Shown here piece by piece: positions 52,796 through 64,000 of a stretch of 64,000 bases of DNA. The position numbers were made by a program, and so were the translations under genes. Numbering within the stretch: position 1 is the first letter of the stretch; the number at the start of each line of letters is the position of its first letter. The notes beneath the pieces are model-generated. The model was not told where the DNA came from and searched no databases. It saw nothing but the letters and a program-made list of their open reading frames with translations. This DNA comes from Phaeosaccion multiseriatum (Eukaryota; Protista; Ochrophyta, other classes), in assembly GCA_965112735.1 (NCBI GenBank), contig OZ218953.1, positions 3,472,001 to 3,536,000 of the forward strand. Direction: 5' to 3'.

Positions 52796-55700
52796 TTACC
52801 TCCAGCCGGGCTTGAGGCCACCCCCCCACTCCCCCTCCCCCCTTGCTCCTACTCCCGCTCGCTCCCTCTCTTGCTTGATGGCCGCATACCCTCGAGCCGA
52901 GCGAGACACAAAGGCCGGTGCCCCTTTAAGCGTCACCGGGTTGAAGGTACACCCCTGCATCTCCCTCTGCCTGTCCGCCAGAGCCCCCTGTGCCGCCCGT
53001 TTGTCCCTCTGCCTCTTGCTCTGCTGCAGCCTGGCCATGAGTGTGTGCGGCTCACTCACCACCCGCAGCTTGGAGCGGATCCCCTCAGGGGCCCATTGCG
53101 TGCCCGTAGTGGCCAGAGTGGGGCGGAAGGAGGCCCGCTCATCTTGGAAGCGGTAGTGCGCCGTCTCTCTGAGCCTCTGAGAGGAAGAAGGAGAATAGGT
53201 CGCCCCTTGCTGCCCGCCCCATCCGCTGCCATCCCCCCCCCCCGATCCCAACCGACTGGCCACCCGCCTGAACTCCGTCATCTCCTGCCTCCGTCTGCGC
53301 CTCACAGTGTCCCCTATGGACAGCTCCCCCGTGGTCCGCTTCCGAGTAGACACCATGTATCGGCCGACGCTACTGCTGGCACTGGCCCCCACGCTGCCCC
53401 CCAAGCTGCTGCCATTGGTGCTACTGTTGCAGCTGGCGACGCCCCCACTCCCACCCCTCCAGTTACACGTGGCGGGTTGGAAGGTGCAGCCCTTGAGCTC
53501 CTCCTCTTGCTTGGCGGTCATCGCCCTCCTGCCCCTCACCGCCCTGCGTGCAGACGTGGCCTTGACTCTCTCTAGGAAGGGCATGTTGAGGTGTGCTGAG
53601 GAGGCAGCCCCCCCACCCCGGCGGGCCAGCGCCTTCTCTCGGCGCTTCATGTGGGGTGTCATCTCTGGTTTGAACAGCGGCGTGGCTGTGGCCTGGAGCT
53701 GCTGCAAGCGCTGCTCCTTGCGAATCTCGCTCTGCGCCTGGCGATGCAGGAAGTTGCGCAGGCTGAAACCGCCGCCGCCGGAAGACCCCAGGGTACCGCC
53801 GCCACTTGCACTTCGCCGCCGAGTGAACGTCGTTGTTGCAGGCCTACCGTAGCCTCCACCTCGACTCCGATCTTGCTGCTGCTGCTGCTGCTGCTGTTGG
53901 TAGGACTGGTGCTGCTGGTGCTGCTGCTGGTGCTGCTGCTCCTGCTGTTGGTGATGCCATGGGACTCGTCGGGCCCCGGGGGGGGCAGAGGAGGGTCTCC
54001 GAGGGGGGGCGTCACGATGGCCCGCCCCCCTGCCGCCGCTGCCACTGCTGCTGCGATGCATACCCTGAGGCGCACTGGCGTGGCTGAGGCAGTCATCTTG
54101 CGTGTAGCGCGGACAAGTAGGCTCCTCCCGGCAGGACAGGGGTGAGAAGGACCCCTCCTGCTCCTCCTCCCCCCACTCCCCCTCCTCCTGCCACCCCCCC
54201 TCCTCCCACTCGCCTTGTCCCTCCTGCCCCTCCCCCTCCCCCTCCCCGTACTGAGGCTGAGAATGATGATACTCGCCGCCTCTGCGCGGCCCCGTCGCGA
54301 GGAAGCTGTTGACATGCATCACTGCTACGCCCTCCTGAGAGGCCTCGCCGCACCCGTGCTGAGGATACCCGTGCCCGCCATACCTATCTTGGCGGTGGTG
54401 GTGGTGGTGGTGGTGGTGCTGGGGCTGGTGTTGGAACGCTGTGACAGGCGGAGGCGCATCAAAGCACTCGTTCACGGGCGCCCGCGGGAAGCCCCCTCCC
54501 TGTTCCTGGTCCGCCCAGTCCGCGTGATCGGCCCCCTCCTCCCCCCCTTGCCCTCCTCCCTCCCATCCCCGCCCTCCTCCTTCCCCCCATTCCCCTCCTC
54601 CTCTTCTTCCTCCTCCTCCCCCCCCCCCCCCTCCTTCTCCTCCTGCTGCTGCTGCTGCTGTACGGCCCGGGCTCAGACACGCCGCCCTCTTGGTGAGGCG
54701 TGACGTCACATCTTCCTGCAGATACAGCGCCGCCGTCGCCATGCCTCGCCCCAGGGGGTTGGTCACAGGATGGAAGGTCAGCTGCGGATCGTCGGGGGGC
54801 TCATAGCCCCCTTCTCGACATCGATATCGGCCTCTATATTCGTCCCTGTACCGAGGCCGCACGTCCCTCGGGCGCACTCCCGTGCCGCTGAGCGTCAGTC
54901 CCAGCGTGGCCATGCCGGGCATGGAGGGTTGGAAAGTGCACTCTTCGTCCTCGTCGGACGCGTCACCGGACCCCCCCTGCTGTAACACACACTGCCCACC
55001 GCCGTCTTCTTCCCCACCCATCTGCCCCCCCTGCATGCCCAGCCAGCCGTCTCTCCTCGACGGGTCCGTCTGTGCGCCCCTGCGAAGCCTAGAGCGGCGC
55101 CTCTGTTTGTCCCACTCAGCCTTATTCGCCTCCCGCTGCCACGCCCCGCTCGCGTATAGCCTCTCCGATGCCGACATCCTCACGTCCTTTACATCCCTTC
55201 CTCCGCCATCTGCATCTCCGCTGCTACCACTGACCCTGCGCCGACGGTGACCACTCTGGGCCCCCCCCCCGCCGCCCCGGCCGCCGCCGGAGTAGGTGGT
55301 AGGTTGAAAGGTGCAGTTCGCCATCTCCTTGTAGAGCTTAATCTTCCTCTCCTGCTCCAACACCGCATCCACGCGCCTGCGCCTCTCCTGCCCGCGCTCG
55401 TACATGTCCATCGCGCCTCCCTCCGCCTCCGCCTGCATCTCCATCTCCGTCTCTGTATGGGTATGCATTCCCATCTCACTCTCCTCAAACCCGTCGAAAC
55501 TACCGTCTGTACCTTCCGTACCTTCTGCTGCCATCGCTCCCCCACCCCTCGCGTCCTCCTCTTCCTCATACTCCTCCTGCTGCTGCTGCTGCTGCCTCTG
55601 CCTATGGAGCAATGCCTGCATGGACTCATAACTTCGCATCCCGGGAAGGTCGGGCTGGAAGCTGTGGCACGTCTTCCCGCCCCCGCCCCCAGCAGGGTAA

Positions 55701-57022
55701 GTGCTCGAACGAATGTCGACGTCGACATCAAAGTCGAGATCGATACCCTCTCGGACGCCTGACGCTCTCCGAGCCTGCTGAGCCAGGCCCTGCCCATACG
55801 TTTGTCCCCGTGCCAGTCCCTCCTCCTCCCATTCCTGCTGCTCCTCCTGCCATTTCTGCTGCCCCTCGAGAGCCGGGCCTTCTCGTGCAGAGCTGCTGCT
55901 TCGGTTGTGCTCATGTTCAGGGACAGGGGAGGCGTCGGGGGTGCCTAACGTCAGCATCATGCGCTCCACTGGACCCATCGAAGCACCCCAATCCCCCTCT
56001 CTCCGCTGCTGCTGCTGCTGCTCGCCGTTTCCAAGGTGCTGCCGTGCTTGCTGCTGCGGGCTGCACCCAGAGCCCCTCCGGCTGTGTCCTCCTCCCTTCA
56101 TACCTGGCATCGATCGTCGTCTCAACGGCGGTGCCGATGCTCCTCTTGCCTTCCTGCCTGCCTCTCCCTCTCCCCCGACTCCTCCTCTTCCTCCTCCTCC
56201 TGCTGCTGCCGCATCCTCCGATCTTCTCCTCTGAAGGTGTATATTCTCCATGTGTTTTTTTCTCTTTAGATGGATGAGCTCGGCGACGCTTCCCTTGTGC
56301 AGAAAGCCCTGCCCCTGCCCATGCTGCAGGGTTAGGGCTTGGGCTCGCGAGGAGTGAGATGTGGCCACCTGCTCGGAAGAGCAAGCGGGCGGCAAGGACG
56401 CCCCCCCGGGGGCCGGCTTGGTATCGTCTGGGACATCATCTGACTCGCTGCTTTCCCCCCACTGCTGCTCCTCCTCCTCTCCTGGAAGTGAGGCCCCAGC
56501 TGCCACACGCTCAATGGCCCCACTCTCACTGTTCCGCCGGAAGGCAGGGCGATTCCAGCTCTCACCCCCCTCAATGTCCTCCTCAACCGGGAGCGCAGAC
56601 ACTCGTTGGTTCTCCTTCTCATGCTGTGTACCAGCGCTGCGGGCCTCTGCGGTTACAGCGATGCATCCCTGGCCTGCTACCGTATGGGCGCCGATGTCTG
56701 GCGAGGGCGGTGGCGAAGACGTCGAGTTGCTCGCCGTCGTGGGCGTGGAGGCCGGCTTGTGCTCGAGCAGACTTGCAGATGGGTGAGGTGACGATGCAAG
56801 CGCTGCTGGCTCACTCTCCTCAGCTGCCGTTGTTGCTCCTGCCCCTTCCCTTCTGGTGCCATTCTGAGCCTGACTTCCCTCGCTCTCTGCCTCTGGAGTC
56901 TCTGCGGAGGAAGCCAAGGTAGCCGCGGGGCGTTTTAGCTTGGTCAGGTGACTATAAAGCTGCTGCTGGGAGATTTGCCCAGCCTTCAGCTTCTTTACGA
57001 GCTCGACGACCTCGCTTTGCAT
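52796..57022 (-). CDS. Large intronless disordered protein with dispersed CTFxP repeats (candidate cytoskeletal/microtubule-associated protein)
   Basis: ~1400-codon uninterrupted ORF. Repeats ANCTFQP, EECTFQP, QLTFHP, PLFKP, KGCTFQP, ASFRP and QGCTFNP are each preceded by charged helices. Confidence 0.75.
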   Translation of the reverse strand: MQSEVVELVKKLKAGQISQQQLYSHLTKLKRPAATLASSAETPEAESEGSQAQNGTRREGAGATTAAEESEPAALASSPHPSASLLEHKPASTPTTASNSTSSPPPSPDIGAHTVAGQGCIAVTAEARSAGTQHEKENQRVSALPVEEDIEGGESWNRPAFRRNSESGAIERVAAGASLPGEEEEQQWGESSESDDVPDDTKPAPGGASLPPACSSEQVATSHSSRAQALTLQHGQGQGFLHKGSVAELIHLKRKKHMENIHLQRRRSEDAAAAGGGGRGGVGGEGEAGRKARGASAPPLRRRSMPGMKGGGHSRRGSGCSPQQQARQHLGNGEQQQQQRREGDWGASMGPVERMMLTLGTPDASPVPEHEHNRSSSSAREGPALEGQQKWQEEQQEWEEEGLARGQTYGQGLAQQARRASGVREGIDLDFDVDVDIRSSTYPAGGGGGKTCHSFQPDLPGMRSYESMQALLHRQRQQQQQQEEYEEEEDARGGGAMAAEGTEGTDGSFDGFEESEMGMHTHTETEMEMQAEAEGGAMDMYERGQERRRRVDAVLEQERKIKLYKEMANCTFQPTTYSGGGRGGGGGAQSGHRRRRVSGSSGDADGGGRDVKDVRMSASERLYASGAWQREANKAEWDKQRRRSRLRRGAQTDPSRRDGWLGMQGGQMGGEEDGGGQCVLQQGGSGDASDEDEECTFQPSMPGMATLGLTLSGTGVRPRDVRPRYRDEYRGRYRCREGGYEPPDDPQLTFHPVTNPLGRGMATAALYLQEDVTSRLTKRAACLSPGRTAAAAAGGEGGGGGGGGGRRGGGEWGEGGGRGWEGGGQGGEEGADHADWADQEQGGGFPRAPVNECFDAPPPVTAFQHQPQHHHHHHHHRQDRYGGHGYPQHGCGEASQEGVAVMHVNSFLATGPRRGGEYHHSQPQYGEGEGEGQEGQGEWEEGGWQEEGEWGEEEQEGSFSPLSCREEPTCPRYTQDDCLSHASAPQGMHRSSSGSGGRGAGHRDAPPRRPSSAPPGARRVPWHHQQQEQQHQQQHQQHQSYQQQQQQQQQDRSRGGGYGRPATTTFTRRRSASGGGTLGSSGGGGFSLRNFLHRQAQSEIRKEQRLQQLQATATPLFKPEMTPHMKRREKALARRGGGAASSAHLNMPFLERVKATSARRAVRGRRAMTAKQEEELKGCTFQPATCNWRGGSGGVASCNSSTNGSSLGGSVGASASSSVGRYMVSTRKRTTGELSIGDTVRRRRRQEMTEFRRVASRLGSGGGDGSGWGGQQGATYSPSSSQRLRETAHYRFQDERASFRPTLATTGTQWAPEGIRSKLRVVSEPHTLMARLQQSKRQRDKRAAQGALADRQREMQGCTFNPVTLKGAPAFVSRSARGYAAIKQERERAGVGARGEGEWGGGLKPGWR

Positions 57023-57594
57023 CCTTGAGACTTTCTTGGCTGGGTACTGCAGCAGCAGCTTCCAACTCTGCACCCCCGCTCGCGCCGCGGCCCCTGCCTA
57101 AGATCTTGAGCTCGCTATGGATTAGCCCTTGGCAGCCAACGCCATCTAGCTTCTCTCTTTTACTCCTTTAGGGTGGGAGACAAATAATTTAAAGTCGATG
57201 TGTGCCGTTACACGATTACGCTTCCGGCCTTTAATAATCCTTTTCTTTTCTCATGGCCGCCCGCCCGGTGTGGACTTTAATGACCGGTGAGTGACCCCAT
57301 GCTCCGCATCTCCGCCCAACGGCTGGTGGAACCGCCGATATGGACGCCCGTGGATGGTAACATTGGACATGGGACATGGGACTCAGCACTGATGCTACCC
57401 AATTTTGCGCACTTCTCCACGGCGAAAGGAAGAGCAGTTATGAAGTTTGTGAGTATTCCCGGAGAGAAACGTTGAGGTGAGTCCACACGTCAGTACCGCT
57501 GTGGCATGGCACGGCCCACAACTGCCGATGGACCGTGTGGTGATGTTCGGTCATGTGCGGCATTTCTTCACTCACAACACAAGCCTCCCTTCAA

Positions 57595-57812
57595 ATGGAG
57601 ACCACCTTTCACGCTCGGGCGCTCGCCGTGGTGGAGCAGCATACCAATGAGACGTTCGCACATTGGTACGATGGGAATGGCAGGGAGGTGGAGAAGTACA
57701 CCTTCGGAGACATGTGGGATCAGGTGAGAAAGGGGAAAAGGCGAGCTACTCTGACAATAATCCGACTCCTTGCTACTCCTTCTCTCCCTCCAGCCCTAGG
57801 CACTGTACGCGC

Positions 57813-57848
<36 letters not shown>

Positions 57849-60800
57849 AGACAGATGAGGCCCACCTCACCGCCGTTTGGCCACTTTGTTCCGTTCCCGT
57901 TACACCTTGGTCTCCGTTACACACAGGCGGGCACCATCGCCTGCTCGCTGCGCGACGATTGGGGCGTGCCCAAGGGAGCCATGGTGGTGCTGTGCTACGG
58001 GCCGGGCATGCACTTCTTCGCCGCCTTTCTGGGCTGCCTGAGAGCGGGCGTGGTGGCTGTGATGGTTTACCCACCCTCCCCTCCCCTGACCACGTCCCTG
58101 TCCAAGATGAGCAAGATCGTCGCGGACTGCCAGCCCGTGCTGTGCCTCACCGACTCCAAGATTATGACCATGCGTAGGCTTGACAGGGCTAATCCGATGT
58201 CTGCCTCCCGCAAGCTATGGCCCAAGGACCTCACCTTTAAGGCTACCGATGGAGGGCTACTCGACAGCCTGTGGCCCGCGTCCTCCTCCTCCGCCGCCTC
58301 CGCCTCCGCCTTCTTCGCCTTCTCTCCCCCCTCCTCCGCCACGGCCGCCACCACCTCCTCCTCTTCCTCTGTCTTCTCCTTCTCCTCCTCTTCCACTACC
58401 TGGCCCGGGAAGAGCCTCTACGGATCCCCTGGGTTGGGCCCAGACGATCTGGCCTTCCTGCAGTACACCAGTGGCTCTACTGGCGATCCCAAGGGCGTCA
58501 TGGTGACCTATGGTGCGCTCATGGCTAACGTACACTACATTGCAAACCACCCCTCGGGCATGTGTGGCCTATGCCCCTTCAACAACGAGCAAGGCCTACC
58601 TTCTCCGACACCGAAGAGACCGCAGCAGGGCATTTGCCCCTATCTTGCGAGCCTCGGCAGCAGCTCCGACGCCGAGGTGTTTGATGTACCGCTGGTGGGC
58701 TTCTCCTGGCTGCCGCAGTATCACGTGAGTGAGAGTCATATGTGTGCGTATGGCATGAGTGAGGGGGCCAATGAGGGAGGGACTGCGTGAGTGCGTGAGT
58801 GAGACAGTGAGCGAGCGACTGAGAGAGGCAGGCAGGCAAGCAGGGAGCAGGGAGAAGATGGAGAAGAAGCAAGTACACTACCCAGGCTGTCTCTAGAGTG
58901 TCTTTTAACGCACCCTCTCTCCTCCCTCTCTTCCCCTATAACAGGACATGGGCCTGGTGACTGGTCTGCTCATGCCCTTCCTCACTGGCATGACCATGCA
59001 CTACATGTCCCCCGTCAGCTTCATCAAGCGGCCCCTGCTCTGGCTGGAGCTCATGTCTCGGCACCGCGTGGAGTGGTCTGTCGCCCCCGACTTTGCCTAC
59101 GCCCTCTGCGCCCGGTACATGGCCAAATTGCGTAGTGCGGGCCGGCAGCCCCCCCGGGAAGCTCTGGACCTGTCCCGCCTTTTGAGCCTGCAAAGCGCGG
59201 CAGAGCCCATCCGCAGAGAGACTATCGACAGTTTCGAGAAGGAATTCAAGCCCTACGCCCTACCCGATCGGTCAGTCTGCCGGTCTGCCCGCTCATATGC
59301 CTCCATCTCCCTCCCTCCCTCCCTTCCTCCCTCCCCGCCTTAACCCCCCCCCCTTCCTCTTGTGCTGGAACAGATGGTTCTCTGCCGGCTACGGTCTGGC
59401 CGAGCACGTTGTCCTTGGTGAGTTCCGTAGCTTGCAATACAATAGCACAATTCTTTCCTTGTACCCATCCACGTGCGAGGCCTGCGCTGACTCTTCCGTC
59501 TCTCTGCCTCTTGGTCTCTCTTGCCCCCCCTCCCCTCCCCTCCCCTCCCCTCCCCCCCTCAGGCTGCTGGACAGACTCCAGCCAAGCTTCAGTCTCAAGG
59601 CCCGAGCTCATGAGCGTGGGCTGCCCGGCCAACCTCACGGACTTCATGGACATCCGCATCGTCGACCCGGAAACCAAAGCGGAGGTGAGCGCGGAGGGCA
59701 TCACGGGCGAGATCTGGCTCTCGTCGCCCTCCGTGGCCAAGGGTTACCTCAACCGGCCGCAGCAGTCGGAGGAAACCTTTCGCGCTTGCATCAGTCAGTC
59801 TCCGCACACACTGACAGCGGCAACCGCAGCGACGGCGGCAGGAGCGGCAGCAACAGCAACAGCAACTACAGGACGGAGTGTTCGCATTGTGGAGCTGTTC
59901 TCCGCAAGTGACCGAAGCGACAGCGACGAGGACGAGGAGGACGAGGAGACAGAGATCGAGGGGTCCAAGCTCGACCGCGGCGGCGATGGCAGCGGCAGCG
60001 CCAGCATCTGCACCATCAGGACCATGAGCAACAGCAGGAGCAGCAGCTGCAGCATCGTGCCCACCGCGGAGTCCTCCTCCTCGCCGCCAGCCACATATTT
60101 GCGCACCGGAGACCTCGGCTTCTTGGAGAATGGACTGCTCTTTGTGTGCGGCCGCATCAAGGACCTCATCATCTTCAACGGGGTCAACCACTACCCGCAG
60201 GACGTCGAGTTTGCCGTGCAAGAGGCCTCTCCCACCATTCGGCAGGGGTGCGTGGCCGCCTTCTCCTCCGACGAGACGCGAGGAGACGGCGTGGTGGAGG
60301 TGGTGTTCGAAATTCGCAAGGAGCACGAGGGAGCTGGCGCCCAGGCTGTCAAGGCGGCACAAGCGGCGGTGCGTGCGGCCGGCCTAAACCCCGGCTGGGT
60401 GGTGGCCATCAAGCAGAAGACCATCCCCAAGACTACGAGCGGCAAAATCCGACGGCGGGCTACCCGAGAGGCGCTTCACGCCGGCGAGTTGCACGTGGTG
60501 AGCGAGGCGCGAAGAGGCAAACATGCCGCTGCCAGTGTCAGTGCTAGTGCTGCGGATGGTGAGGCCCTCGCCAGAGGCCGTCGATCAGGGCCACCACAGG
60601 CGCAGGAGGACTTGTTCCCGTGCCACCACAGCAGCGGCCTTGTGTCGAGGCTCGTGTCGGGCCCAATGACGAGCCCTGTCTTCCCCGCCAAGAGCGGCCG
60701 AGGCTCGCGGAGCAGTGCCCTGCCCCCTCCTTGTCGGGAGGCACGACAGATGCTCCTCCTCCGTGGTGTGCTGCAGCTCGAGAGAGCGGTGCTCTTCCCC

Positions 60801-62169
60801 GAGGGGGGCGCAGACAGCGACGGAGGGTCTGCGGCGGCGGGCCCGGGAGCACATGTTGGCTTCTTGGAAGCGGGTCTGACATCCGTCAACCTGGCAGAAC
60901 TCGCGGTGGAGGTGGAGAACTGGTGAGTCTGTGAGTGCGTGTGTGCGTGCGTGCGTGCGTGCGTGTGTGAGTGAGTGATTGAGTGAGTGAGTGATTGATT
61001 GATAGAGTGAGTGAGTGAGTGAGTGAGTGAGTGCGTGAGTGAGTGCGTGAGTGAGTGAGTGAGTGAGTGAGTGAGTGCATGAGCGAGTGAAAGAGTGAGT
61101 GAGTGCGTGAGTGAGTGCGAGCGTGCGTGTGTGGACGAAAGGCCGGTGCTTTCTTCGTCCATACTTCTTCCCTGCTTCGCTTTTCCTCGCTCGGATGATT
61201 TTTTTTTTTTCTTCATTTTTCTAACATGTTCCAACACATGAACCCCCTCAGGCTGAACCCGACCAGCGACGACCGCCTCTGCATGGCCAAGCCTGGGACA
61301 GACATGCCTCGATTACTGGAGCTGGACACCGTCGCCCTCCTCGAGCATCCTACCCCCGCTCTGCTGGCCAAGCACCTCGACGAGCTCCTATTCGGGGCCG
61401 AGGGAGGGAGCGGCGGGACAGAGCAGGAGGGCTCCCCACGCGCCACCAAGGGCACCGACGAGAAAGAGGAGCAACTACCGCAATACAAAGAGGAGCACCA
61501 ACAGCAGGAGCAAGGCCAACAGGACCAGCAGGAACATCAGGGCGTGGACGTGGCCATTATCGGTATGGCTTGCCGCTTCCCCGGGGGTTGCAACAGCCCG
61601 GAGGAGCTGTGGGCCAAGCTGTGCGCAGGGACGGACTGTGTACGCGACGCTCCCCCCGAGAGAGGGCTCGGCAAAGACGTGCAAGGTGAGCGCTCTCCCT
61701 CCCTGTCGAGGCAGGGGAAGTCCAGGGTCGGGGGCTTGGGGGTCAGAGGATCACAGTCAGCGTGCGTAAGGAGGGGCAGGGTCCGGGTCGGCGTAAAGAG
61801 GGCAGGGGTAGGATCGGGATTCAGGGGCAAGGACATCGGGCAGGGGGTCGGGGGTGGGGCTTGCAGAGCGCTTTTAGCAACATGAGCTCGTGGGTGGTCG
61901 TGGAAGGAGGCGTGGAGCGCAGCCTTTGTCGACCCATCCAAGCACACCACCAGAGCCCATCATGCCGTTGACGCTCCTCATGTACCCCGCTCTTCTTTCC
62001 CCGTCTGTGCTGCCCCTGTCCCCTGTGTGTGCTGCACTACAGGCGGTTTCATCGACGACGTGGAGCTGTTCGACAACGCCTTCTTCGGCATCTCCGCGGC
62101 CGAGGCGGCGGCTATGGACCCCTCCCAGCGCCTCATGCTCGAGACTTCCTACAAGGTGAGTGAGGGGTA

Positions 62170-62201
<32 letters not shown>

Positions 62202-64000
62202 CAAGAGTACATTTTTTTGGACGCAGATTAAAAGTAAGAAGTGGAAAGCCTGTCTGCCTATCTGCCTGTCTGCCTGTCTGCCTGCCTGTCTGCTTGCCTG
62301 CCTGTCTGCCTGCCTGAATATCTACCTGCCTGTCTGTCTGCCTGCCTGAATGCCTGCCTGCCTGTCTGTCTGCCTGCCTGTCTGTCTGTCTGTCTGTCTG
62401 TCTGTCTCCCTGTCTGCTCGCCTGTCTGGCTGACTGGCTGGTTGGCTCGCCGCCCCTCCTTCCGGCCGGCCTGCCTGCCTGCCTGCATGCTCCTCACCAA
62501 GAGAATAAATCTAAACCTCTGTGTGACCTTGAACTTCAAACAAACTTTAAACAGGCCCTGCATGCGGCCGGGTTTCCGGGCCGGCACGCTCTTCGGGGAC
62601 AGAAAGTGGGTGTTTTTGTGGGTATGGCGGGTAGCGACTGGGCCGCCCTGGAGCACAAGGTGGCGCACGGCAAGGCAGTGAGCGGCAGCAGTAAGGCAGT
62701 GAGCGGCAGCAGTAAGGCAGTGAGCGCCCCTCCCTCGGGCTACTCCGTCGTGGGCAGCTGCCCCGGCTGCGTGGCGGGCCGCGTCTCACAGAGCTTGGGT
62801 CTCACGGGCCCAAGTCAGACCCTGTGCGCGGCATGTCCATCCTCGCTGGTGGCGCTGGATGCGGCATGCAACAACCTGGTATTGGGGCGGTGCTCGGCGG
62901 CGGTGGTGGGGGGCGTGAACCTGCTGCTGCATCCAGATACCTTCCACTCGCTGGGAAGGGCCGGTCTGCTCTCCAAGCGACGGTAAGTGCGGGAGTCAGT
63001 GAGTGAGTGAGTGAGTCAATGAGTGAGTGAGTGTGTGAGTGTGTGAGTGTGTGAGTGTGTGAGTGAGTGAGTGAGTGAGTGAGTGAGTGAGTGAGTGTGT
63101 GTGTGTGTGAGTGAGTGAGTTAAATAACGAGGGAAAGTCAGTGGGCAGTCGTCCGTATGCCTCGCCTCACTGCATGCCCCTTCCGACCCCTTTCCGACCA
63201 CACACAGCCGCTGCAAGTCGTTCGACGCTTGCGCCGACGGTTACGTGCGGGCCGAGGGCTGCGGCGCTATCGTTGTGAAACGCCTCGACGACGCTGTGGC
63301 GGCGGGGGACAACGTACTCGCGGTCATCAAAGCCACAGCCGTCAGCCACAACGGAGCAAGCGCCTCCCTCGCGGCGCCCAAGGGACAGGCCATGCAGAGT
63401 GCGGCTAGGGACGCACTGGCCCGAGGGGGCTTACATGGTACGGAGGTGAGCTACGTGGAGGCACACGGTACCGGCTCCAAGCTGGGGGACGCCATCGAGA
63501 TGGGTGAGTGTGTGAGGTATAGCAGAGGGGGGAGGATGAGGGAGCAGAGGAGAGGCGGGAGGAGGGAGTAGAGGAGAGGGGTGGGGGTGAGCGGGTTTAG
63601 GAGAGTAGGGGTGGACGACGGAACACAGGATAGGGGTGGATGAGTACGTACAGTACAGCAATGGGGGGTGGGTGGAGGAGTGCACTACAGCAGAGGGGGG
63701 TGGGCGAGTGGGTGGATGAGTGCAGCAGAGAGGGGTAGGTGAGTGCAGCAGTGGGGATGGGTAAGGGACCAGGCAAGGACGACGTGGGGTTGTGGGAGGT
63801 GCAGAAGAGAGGGCGGGCAGCAGTGACAAAGCGACTTGACACCCTGTTCTCTCAAACTCTCACGTCACGCGCCGCATGTGTGCACTTGTGCTCTTGCTTT
63901 TGCTTTTGCTTTGTCTCCTCCTCCTCATGCAGGGGCTCTTAAGGCCGTGTTCGCCCCTTCCGACCGGCCTCTCCGCTCGCCCCTCGTGGTTGGGTCGGTC
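57595..64000 (+). CDS. Type I polyketide synthase with FAAL loading module: fatty acyl-AMP ligase, ACP, ketosynthase; runs off the right end; at least 10 exons
   Basis: FAAL motifs: [79 protein letters not shown] and [14 protein letters not shown] motifs: [17 protein letters not shown] motifs: [42 protein letters not shown] and EAHGTG. Confidence 0.95.
60923..61130 (+). repeat. (GTGA)n/(GTGC)n intronic microsatellite in the PKS
   Basis: Follows the TG|GTGAGT donor that splits the ACP coding region. Confidence 0.9.
62170..62490 (+). repeat. (CCTG)n/(TCTG)n intronic microsatellite in the PKS
   Basis: Directly visible degenerate tetranucleotide array. Confidence 0.9.

Follow-up and report, generated by a model that had tools for sequence, protein, structure and literature searches.

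Gene structure at the locus

Analysis of the window (the whole 64,000-nucleotide stretch of DNA) and of the contig sequence extended beyond it, numbered here with the prefix L009, revealed one intact nuclear gene of an ochrophyte, a microalga related to the brown algae. The predicted gene comprises 13 exons and 2,633 codons, starts at position 57595 of the window and ends 4.7 kb past the window edge at a TGA (L009:5742, the last base of exon 13). The encoded domains run from an adenylation domain of the FAAL clade through a carrier-like segment, a type I ketosynthase (KS) with a Cys-His-His triad and a second carrier-like segment to a C-terminal domain of the Pls/PosA type, which carries the single invariant His of its family. 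Profile matches to Pfam and NCBIfam were taken exon by exon, each exon separately, and the exons are as follows:

Exon 1: 57595..57723, + strand; ATG and start of the adenylation domain, donor GTGAGA at 57724; similarity to the paralogs starts at its Met.
Exon 2: 57927..58724, + strand; adenylation core with P-loop, Ser/Ala-rich low-complexity insert and SWLPQYH at the end; AMP-binding 93.4 bits.
Exon 3: 58945..59270, + strand; part of the adenylation domain from DMGL onward; FAAL and related NCBIfam models 68-73 bits; aligns to FadD28, FadD32 and 3kxw.
Exon 4: 59374..59417 (44 nt), + strand; a stretch of 15 letters with motif A5; split codons fit, and three paralogs have the same exon end.
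Exon 5: 59563..60922, + strand; short stretch at the expected place of the FAAL insertion, GEIW, 98-residue insert, a 24-letter conserved stretch, linker and first half of carrier 1.
Exon 6: 61252..61685, + strand; second half of carrier 1 and KS start; ketoacyl-synt 38.2 bits.
Exon 7: 62043..62155, + strand; KS, including an 11-letter stretch; ketoacyl-synt 40.9 bits; identity to paralogs 62-79%.
Exon 8: 62555..62982, + strand; KS active-site exon; ketoacyl-synt 87.4 bits.
Exon 9: 63208..63503, + strand; KS part holding the first of the two catalytic His (codon 63464-63466, in EAHGTGS); Ketoacyl-synt_C 59.7 bits.
Exon 10: 63933..64000 and on to L009:2635, + strand; second KS His, linker, carrier 2 and first membrane helix; Ketoacyl-synt_C 51.2 bits.
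Exon 11: L009:2908-3134, + strand; part of the Pls/PosA-type domain.
Exon 12: L009:3418-3664, + strand; part of the Pls/PosA-type domain.
Exon 13: L009:3946-5742 including the TGA, + strand; part of the Pls/PosA-type domain; AlphaFold pLDDT 82.6.

Neither a stop nor a frameshift was found in any exon of the model (2,633 codons checked), all 24 splice sites are canonical GT-AG, and the phases of the 12 introns, the largest of which measures 429 nt, are consistent across the predicted model. Ten exons fall within the window (exons 1 to 9 and the first 68 bases of exon 10, + strand), in agreement with the at least ten spliceosomal exons counted in an earlier sequence-only reading, which was also right that only the first three domains lie inside the window. 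A downstream frameshift, the mark of a pseudogene, was looked for in the extended sequence and none was detected; exon 10 alone is one uninterrupted frame of 567 codons that joins the KS end, via the linker, to carrier 2 and on to the first membrane helix. Contigs from four sequencing runs (one study, none recorded as RNA) over 57500-63499 cross the predicted introns unbroken and without GT-AG joints, which identifies them as genomic DNA, and the few joints listed in them fall in low-complexity repeats.

An alternative in-frame ATG is located at 57553, 42 nt upstream of the exon 1 start. An additional intron in the Ser-rich insert of exon 2 was considered and rejected, since the paralogs are colinear through that stretch. 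The 98-residue acidic/Ser-rich insert of exon 5 (297 nt, 59793-60089) is bounded by GTCAGT and CAG and could be an in-frame intron, in which case the protein would have 2,534 residues; a coding insert is favoured, as the paralogs carry an acidic/Ser-rich linker there too, though a shorter one. The open reading frames on both sides of the gene have no Pfam match and thus give no sign of a gene cluster, and the 3 kb after the TGA match no family. The suggestion that the gene has long resided in an algal nuclear genome was borne out by its 12 spliceosomal introns, by paralogs with common intron positions and by about 30 LHC genes of the genome that carry an ASAF-type plastid-targeting motif. An LHC gene also served to place the organism, in preference to HSP90, which is broken up into short exons.

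Domains of the predicted protein

The three FAAL-type motifs quoted in the sequence-only reading were all found on the + strand: SWLPQYH at 58704-58724, joined across intron 2 to DMGL at 58945, GYGLAEH at 59387-59407, and NHYPQDVE at 60186-60209. A 10-letter P-loop lies at 58467-58496 in exon 2, and the ANL core motifs (stretches of 33 and 10 letters) are all present. The Pfam AMP-binding model matched separate exons with 93.4, 32.6 and 26.8 bits. Among NCBIfam models, exon 5 matched a FadD32-like family with 141.5 bits, FAAL PRK12476 with 137 bits and FAAL models generally with 132-141 bits, as compared to 105 bits for PRK07768, the best of the models named as CoA ligases, and at most 72 bits for the others; in exon 3, PRK07768 scored slightly above the best FAAL model (72.9 vs 68.1 bits). 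Core motifs and model scores, taken as the mark of a FAAL, hence place the domain with the FAALs rather than with the CoA ligases. Exon 2 is colinear with the paralogs at 48-55% identity, and exon 3 is 71-75% identical to them.

FAALs carry in their N-terminal domain a specific insertion, roughly 20 residues long, that acyl-CoA ligases lack (PMC11837247). Between the parts of exons 3 and 5 that align, 45-49 residues are present here, compared to 62-68 in FadD28, FadD32, the Legionella FAAL 3kxw and 7r7g, so that the interval expected to hold the insertion is 16-19 residues shorter than in the solved FAALs; both the short stretch and the exon border recur in the paralogs. The exact place of the insertion inside this interval follows the FadD28 papers. 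The FAAL-specific insertion appears to be missing, and because the interval is 16-19 residues short, transfer to CoA is possible. The label FAAL-type therefore stood as to motifs and model scores, but not as to the insertion.

The first carrier is predicted by motif alone, from GLTSV (Ser codon 60882-60884) followed by a 14-letter stretch that is kept in the paralogs; Pfam PP-binding matched neither half even at E<=10, which is attributed to the intron that splits the segment. The proposed order adenylation-ACP-KS in one intron-split gene was supported, with the KS matched by Pfam and the ACP predicted from its motif. Carrier 2 has its Ser codon at L009:2066-2068, and this Ser, within a DS pair, is invariant in five paralogs and opens a predicted helix. 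A Pfam PP-binding domain occupies the corresponding place in homologues. In carrier 2 itself no PP-binding match was obtained at E<=10, the carrier-2 segments of five paralogs, run as a profile against the PDB, gave no match, and the structure model was poor (pLDDT 49.6).

The KS extends over five exons, three of which match its N-terminal Pfam model (38-87 bits) and two its C-terminal one (59.7 and 51.2 bits). The Cys-His-His triad is present, with Cys codon 62834-62836 and His codons 63464-63466 and L009:1016-1018. The active site reads LCAACPSS, with a Cys (62825-62827) at position -3, where the Asp of DTACSSS normally stands. Among 17 other KSs of the genome this position is Asp in 14, Glu or Gln in two and degenerate in one, so the Asp-to-Cys change is unique to this copy in that comparison. 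DNA contigs of three runs cover the active-site codon without any difference. The rest of the domain is kept, the KS being 47-68% identical to its paralogs, and the closest solved KSs are from PKSs that lack an acyltransferase (AT).

No match to an AT (PF00698) was found in any exon or at the locus, and none is expected to be hidden in the gene, since its introns are too short. A genome-wide search with PF00698 detected ATs at other loci only: 64 domains within large open frames, plus a small gene that stands alone. In the 4.7 kb from the window edge to the gene end, no AT, KR, DH, ER, ST, TE or R domain was found.

The terminal domain matched TIGR02353 on three exons with 14.4, 24.5 and 131.8 bits, and the sum of about 170 bits against a curated cut-off of 423.1 indicates, at the level of sequence, a divergent relative of this family and not an equivalog. 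Hydropathy analysis revealed six hydrophobic membrane helices in three pairs, and three left-handed beta-helix (LbH) segments are predicted. The AlphaFold model of exon 13 (pLDDT 82.6, pTM 0.82) shows the order beta-helix, helical hairpin, beta-helix, hairpin, beta-helix, which matches the description of PosA. Its best Foldseek matches were LbH acyltransferases, including LpxD with ACP; searches by sequence and by Foldseek returned generic LbH enzymes only and no solved structure of a Pls-type terminal domain. The invariant His of the third repeat (55 of 55 bacterial members) is kept as residue 508 of exon 13 (L009:5467-5469), and it is the only kept residue of the bacterial Q.HLFED motif, whose flanking LFED is changed.

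Paralogs and related systems

The genome holds about ten such genes, including eight or more colinear copies, and the seven others compared share intron positions and a conserved C-terminal motif. The paralog on contig 1 contains a TAG and no longer has the KS Cys and His, and a version without KS is present on contig 12 (locus L027). As compared to its paralogs, the window copy has the most divergent terminal domain and long low-complexity inserts. Approximately 33 Pls-type domains were found in the genome, most of them on PKS or NRPS genes, and the genes that end in such a domain range from enzymes of about 2,600 residues to giant modular PKSs. A word-index protein search for other multidomain fusions, with the terminal domain of a long paralogous open reading frame as query, gave no matches, low-complexity words having probably swamped it.

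With Pls (epsilon-poly-L-lysine synthetase) and PosA (delta-poly-L-ornithine synthetase), the protein shares six helices in three pairs, three beta-helices, a position after a carrier domain and the invariant His. It differs in having a FAAL-clade adenylation domain and a KS upstream instead of an amino-acid A domain, in an identity of only about 20-32% with an HMM score far under the cut-off, and in the change of most residues conserved in bacteria. A homopolymer of the Pls kind is unexpected here because the donor would have no amine. To our knowledge, the only studied members of this domain family make polylysine and polyornithine.

In its proposed logic the protein also resembles FadD32 and Pks13, the mycolic acid condensase of Corynebacteriales, where a FAAL loads an N-terminal carrier and one KS performs a single Claisen condensation on a second carrier before transfer to an acceptor in place of hydrolysis; FadD32 and Pks13 models were among the best NCBIfam matches. 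Unlike that pair, it is one polypeptide with no AT, its release would be through a membrane LbH domain and not a transferase of the TE type, its FAAL insertion appears missing, and the Asp needed in Pks13 is replaced by Cys. Olefin synthases of the Ols/CurM type start with the same FAAL-ACP-KS, but their AT-KR-ACP-ST-TE was not found.

A FAAL-like domain (35-60% identical in the motif regions), a carrier and the same terminal domain also occur in MpACOS18 of Marchantia (P0176), a Stygiella transcript (P0112) and a metagenomic protein (P0001). MpACOS18 and P0001 have no KS, while P0112 has KS modules in between, with two full reducing modules that include AT, and none of the three terminal domains is more than 32% identical to that of this protein. 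No mention of MpACOS18 was found in the literature, nor anything on TIGR02353 or a "terminal domain of unknown function" in connection with PKSs. We know of no study of an enzyme with the arrangement FAAL, carrier, KS, carrier and Pls-type domain.

Type I PKSs with an LbH at or near the C-terminus, often without AT, have been described in the dinoflagellate Karenia brevis (PMC5725682) and the pelagophyte Chrysophaeum taylorii (PMC10366177), the latter including some with N-terminal adenylation domains (PMC10366177). Both papers list the LbH just as "atypical", without a tie to Pls/PosA, membrane helices or chain release, and no description of the compact FAAL, carrier, KS, carrier, LbH form was found in either (PMC5725682, PMC10366177). 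We rate LbH-ended protist PKSs as a kind already noted but uncharacterised, and the compact form as a variant of that kind. Among characterised PKSs and FASs, no close orthologue of the gene was found.

Proposed function and alternatives

The domain order suggests an enzyme in which the adenylation domain would convert a fatty or other lipophilic acid into an acyl-AMP and load it on carrier 1, while a separate acyltransferase would place an extender, probably malonyl, on carrier 2. The KS would then take the chain from carrier 1 and condense it once with the extender, giving a 3-oxoacyl chain on carrier 2, and this chain, without hydrolysis, would be moved by the membrane-embedded beta-helix domain to an amine or hydroxyl of a membrane acceptor. 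The transfer step is proposed by analogy with Pls and PosA, in which lysine or ornithine passes from a carrier to a free amine, and with LpxA and LpxD, which use acyl-ACP. Taken as a whole, FAAL activation, a single condensation and transfer by the membrane domain form an explanation that we hold to be probable, if only just.

A KS that no longer condenses, and instead passes or gates the chain so that an unextended fatty acyl is attached to the acceptor, is unlikely. The Asp-to-Cys change, unique among the KSs compared, at the position where D264A cripples Pks13, the versions without KS (L027, P0001 and MpACOS18) and the lack of an AT in the gene to load an extender would all fit such a KS, but the Cys and the two His on which decarboxylative condensation depends are retained, in a domain otherwise well conserved with its paralogs, and 430 residues that stay open over five exons would be difficult to account for if the domain were idle. 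It is improbable that the terminal domain acts as a polymerase, linking (hydroxy)acyl units from carriers head to tail and extruding at the membrane an insoluble product, be it a polyester or an aliphatic polymer of the wall or surface. Characterised members of the family do polymerise iteratively, with free monomer or polymer as acceptor, and the roughly 33 such domains of the genome end lipid-building synthases; however, the protein has no KR to provide a hydroxyl, the predicted 3-oxoacyl chain would have no nucleophile, so that a hydroxylated primer would be needed, and apart from the His the residues conserved in the bacterial polymerases are changed.

We give just as little credence to the view that this member of a large family is redundant, decaying or silent and has no function itself, even though colinear copies are numerous, the contig 1 copy is degenerate, and the window copy combines long low-complexity inserts with an odd KS motif and a terminal domain more divergent than in the other copies. 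With about 0.03 stops expected per random codon, 2,633 open codons are incompatible with long neutral drift, and the 24 canonical splice sites, the catalytic residues and the C-terminal motif are kept. Highly improbable, finally, is the view taken in the sequence-only reading, according to which the gene is the loading end of a multi-module megasynthase, possibly a hydrocarbon synthase of the OLS/CurM type. FAAL-ACP-KS does start such lines and giant modular PKSs are present in the genome, but extension of the contig revealed only a second carrier-like segment and the Pls/PosA-type domain before the TGA, with no AT, KR, DH, ER, ST or TE in the 4.7 kb that complete the gene and no family match in the next 3 kb; neither the megasynthase nor the olefin-synthase analogy survived this result.

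Polyketide and fatty-acid lines are thought to release their products via thioesterases, reductases or condensation domains. In the reading preferred here, the approximately 33 Pls-type domains, which mostly end PKS or NRPS genes of one alga, would represent a membrane beta-helix transferase in place of these usual release domains. A bolder proposal, which we regard as quite unlikely, is that fatty-acid and polyketide lines of this alga and of scattered other eukaryotes generally release their chains through the Pls-type membrane domain, and that the compact FAAL-KS enzymes polymerise or graft lipid chains on a membrane or wall acceptor while extruding them; if true, this would be the first lipid, non-amino-acid substrate for a Pls-type domain, and the reaction would offer a way to make insoluble aliphatic polymers at the surface. 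With a single predicted step each of activation, condensation and transfer, the compact form is the smallest member and the easiest to work with for learning how the domain acts on a lipid chain, which acceptor it takes and whether a membrane lipid, a signal or a wall polymer results. Because relatives occur in a liverwort, a chytrid, a jakobid, a dinoflagellate and a pelagophyte, the answer may well apply widely.

Gene structure and genomic setting

The assembly of Phaeosaccion multiseriatum comprises 67.1 Mb in 22 contigs, with a G+C content of approximately 62%; the window occupies positions 3,472,001-3,536,000 of contig 4. Each open block between window positions 57553 and 64000 was profile-scanned singly, and exons were kept separate in searches and folds. 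The blocks matched, in order, AMP-binding, FAAL families, the N-terminal ketoacyl-synt domain (three blocks) and the C-terminal ketoacyl-synt domain. Direct reading of the junctions revealed that every conserved block carries GT at its 3' end (mostly GTGAGT) and that the next block follows a pyrimidine tract and AG. The sequence-only reading had claimed at least 10 exons, and ten were counted inside the window with consistent junctions and phases; the motifs that it quoted were all found in the sequence. Extending the contig to the right and annotating its domains, as it had proposed, reached the end of the gene through stop-free exons. Exon 10 starts at 63933 and contains 567 uninterrupted codons, which begin with the KS end (GHMEG) and continue through a low-complexity linker and a carrier-like segment into a hydrophobic helix. 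Three more exons follow, the last of 598 codons, with a TGA at continued coordinate 68742 (L009:5742 in the downstream stretch). The complete 13-exon model has 7,902 coding bases and encodes 2,633 residues; its split codons are all sense, its phases are consistent and its exons contain no stops. The splice joins predicted inside the window are 57723/57927, 58724/58945, 59270/59374, 59417/59563, 60922/61252, 61685/62043, 62155/62555, 62982/63208, and 63503/63933, and three more are predicted downstream of it. The protein would have 2,534 residues if a 297-nt acidic/Ser-rich stretch of exon 5 (59794-60090) is an in-frame intron.

TIGR02353, the Pls/PosA terminal domain, was the sole specific family matched by the downstream exons; generic acyltransferases of the hexapeptide-repeat type, such as LpxD, LpxA, and WcaF, matched as well. 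The domain scan, for which 40 kb of downstream sequence was fetched, detected no AT, KR, DH, ER, ST, TE or reductase domain in the gene, and none could be hidden in the introns, since the largest of these measures 429 nt. The observations of the sequence-only reading were thus confirmed and its interpretation was supported in part: the gene had been taken for the front of a fatty-acyl-primed megasynthase, a view that does not hold, as the KS is followed by only a carrier-like segment and a Pls/PosA-type domain before the TGA.

Microsatellites with tetranucleotide units, of the types (GAGT)n/(CACT)n and (CTGC)n, fill the introns at window positions 62983-63120, 60923-61100, and 62156-62500, and the GAGT-type stretch has more than 250 other genomic matches at approximately 90% identity. 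A minus-strand ORF of 1,425 codons, rich in Gly/Gln/Glu/Ser runs and without a hit in Pfam (window 52796-57073), lies upstream of the gene at a distance of about 500 bp, and the two would have a divergent promoter region in common. The summed depth of read contigs rose 10- to 30-fold at 57900-58100, 58900-59100, and 60100-60500; these peaks coincide exactly with the most conserved FAAL motifs and all four variant positions fall there, reflecting paralog cross-mapping and not heterozygosity.

The genome also contains approximately 30 single-exon light-harvesting-protein (LHC) genes. One LHC protein has an ...ASAF/MAP... signal-cleavage motif, as is usual in algae that have secondary red plastids. 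Among named sequences, its best relatives were those of Chrysoparadoxa australica (51-52% identity), Tribonema minus (46%), diatoms, a chrysophyte and a brown alga. On this basis the organism was placed among the ochrophyte (stramenopile) algae, close to the brown-alga/xanthophyte group. A tandem array at G000:C9:474910-521083 holds about 11 LHC genes, nearly identical and repeated approximately every 4.5 kb, in two inverted halves that join near 498-499 kb.

Adenylation, carrier and ketosynthase domains

Sequence models grouped the adenylation domain with FAALs, exon 5 above all.

Profile scores of exon 5
FadD32-like family: 141.5 bits
Other FAAL models: 132-137 bits
PRK07768 (named a CoA ligase): 105 bits
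Other acyl-CoA ligases: at most 72 bits

The FAAL-specific insertion, a defining feature of FAALs (PMC11837247) thought to prevent reaction with CoA, appears from the alignment to be missing: the interval between the aligned ends of exons 3 and 5 is 45-49 residues here, compared to 62-68 in FadD28, FadD32, 3kxw, and 7r7g. The same short interval and an identical exon border are present in three paralogs. The assignment as FAAL-type therefore stands as regards the model scores but not as regards the insertion, and the domain would be a FAAL-clade enzyme without the supposed CoA-blocking element. The likely function of the domain is still the loading of the adjoining carrier.

Carrier segments of the gene
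Window 60882-60884: Ser codon of carrier 1 (GLTSV), which is interrupted by intron 5
L009:2066-2068, downstream stretch: Ser codon of carrier 2 (LSHDSMAIAEL), which is directly N-terminal to the membrane domain

Neither carrier had a match in Pfam or in the PDB profile search, and the predicted structure of carrier 2 was of low confidence. The identity of carrier 2 is supported by an Asp-Ser that is invariant in five paralogs, by a predicted helix that begins at the Ser and a conserved ...TPAALFDMPT... segment, and by a Pfam PP-binding domain that relatives and the large PKS paralogs have in the corresponding place.

The KS retains Cys, His, and His, and its nearest solved structures belong to AT-less PKSs; CurL, DEBS, and animal FAS come next. 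Its active-site motif is LCAACPSS, while the closest paralogs have IDTGCPSAL or IDAGCPSAI, other paralogs VDAACPSAL or VDTACSSAI, and the big PKSs VDTACSSSL. This copy alone, among the paralogous KSs compared, has the Asp three residues before the catalytic Cys replaced by Cys, a codon confirmed by contigs from three read sets. At the equivalent position of Pks13, the D264A change caused a severe loss of function. The loss of this Asp is the main reason for allowing some chance, although a small one, that the KS is non-condensing. Two other rivals were considered, namely that the terminal domain acts as a polymerase and that the gene is silent; both are quite improbable, more so than a non-condensing KS.

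In the preferred reading, condensation by the KS is retained. Domain order, catalytic residues, membrane topology and the lack of a cis-AT and of a classical release domain are established; beyond these, the adenylation domain would activate a fatty acid and load it onto carrier 1, and the KS would perform a single decarboxylative condensation, using an extender that is placed in trans on carrier 2. The loader of carrier 2 could be encoded by a malonyl transacylase-like gene that stands alone on contig 11 (about 2,365,340-2,366,251). The beta-helix domain would then pass the 3-oxoacyl chain to an amine or hydroxyl at the membrane.

The terminal domain

Hydropathy analysis revealed six helices in three pairs. 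The AlphaFold model of exon 13 (36 aligned relatives; pLDDT 82.6, pTM 0.82) contains three beta-helices, of which the first and second are separated by a helical hairpin and two short helices, and the second and third by a long hairpin and helices. This layout equals that predicted for PosA. The best Foldseek matches of this model were serine and maltose acetyltransferases, LpxD with ACP, and LpxA; no solved structure spanning the whole terminal domain was found. A single His invariant across 55 bacterial family members is kept here, whereas the LFED that lies beside it in the bacterial family is lost. The domain's score is far under the curated family cut-off, and it was therefore classified as a divergent relative which probably retains acyl transfer and is not a Pls/PosA equivalent.

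Paralogs and relatives in other organisms

Approximately 33 loci of the genome matched the TIGR02353 profile, and long ORFs at several of them encode KS-AT-DH-ER-KR-...-LbH, KS-AT-ACP-LbH-reductase or KS-DH-ER-KR-ACP-LbH-reductase. A genome-wide list of AT domains comprised 64 in open frames of 675-2,218 codons and, in addition, one small AT gene that stands alone. In several giant modular PKS genes the Pls-type domain, encoded by ORFs of about 880 codons, seems to form the end; example PKS/AT/TIGR02353 regions are C1:1.18-1.32 Mb, C2:0.50-0.54 Mb, C7:0.54-0.57 Mb, and C8:1.91-1.97 Mb.

Colinearity with the gene, from FAAL through terminal domain, is seen at seven other loci: one each on contigs 4, 6, 7, and 10, two on contig 2, and a degenerate copy on contig 1; two tandem copies lie outside this set. 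Identities of the intact copies in the set to the gene were 69-78% for the conserved FAAL exons, 43-79% for the KS and 30-49% for the terminal domain, the degenerate contig-1 copy being lower; five paralogs have the end motif ...AGVP..P...Y..C in common.

Related loci with altered architecture
G000:C1:6977501-6993500 (L036/L037), minus strand: colinear paralog, KS without the catalytic Cys (DDASSPS) and the first His (EADAEGS)
G000:C12:846001-856000 (L027), plus strand: FAAL (approximately 70% identical) and Pls-type domain, without KS
G000:C6:691001-697000 (L033), minus strand: extra FAAL-carrier-KS copy immediately upstream of the paralog on contig 6

The terminal domain of L036/L037 also contains a TAG, and this locus probably represents a pseudogene or else a copy without catalytic function. 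The room after the L033 copy seems insufficient for a terminal domain, so a tandem duplication with truncation may account for it. L027 is built like Marchantia MpACOS18 and the metagenomic protein P0001.

A full HMMER search of exon 13 against 1.84 billion representatives returned 1,074 matches, with identity never above 32%; the source alga's own proteins are absent from the public collections searched. The majority were bacterial A-T-Pls proteins of approximately 1,300 residues, and the best was P0001 (FAAL, carrier, Pls-type), the FAAL of which is 42-46% identical to that of the gene. Eukaryotic matches included transcripts of Stygiella (one, with FAAL, two PKS modules, Pls-type) and Artemidia (one), besides MpACOS18 (amine oxidase, FAAL-like, carrier, Pls-type) and an NRPS of Cladochytrium. 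In the ESM Atlas, exon 13 was nearest to a mainly diatom cluster of hexapeptide fragments. PKSs ending in LbH domains were listed, and not analysed further, for Karenia brevis in 2017 (PMC5725682) and in 2023 for the pelagophyte Chrysophaeum taylorii, whose PKSs also have N-terminal adenylation domains and AT-less modules (PMC10366177). The gene, for which FadD32 plus Pks13 is the closest functional analogy, is a compact new form of a class noticed before and never characterised.
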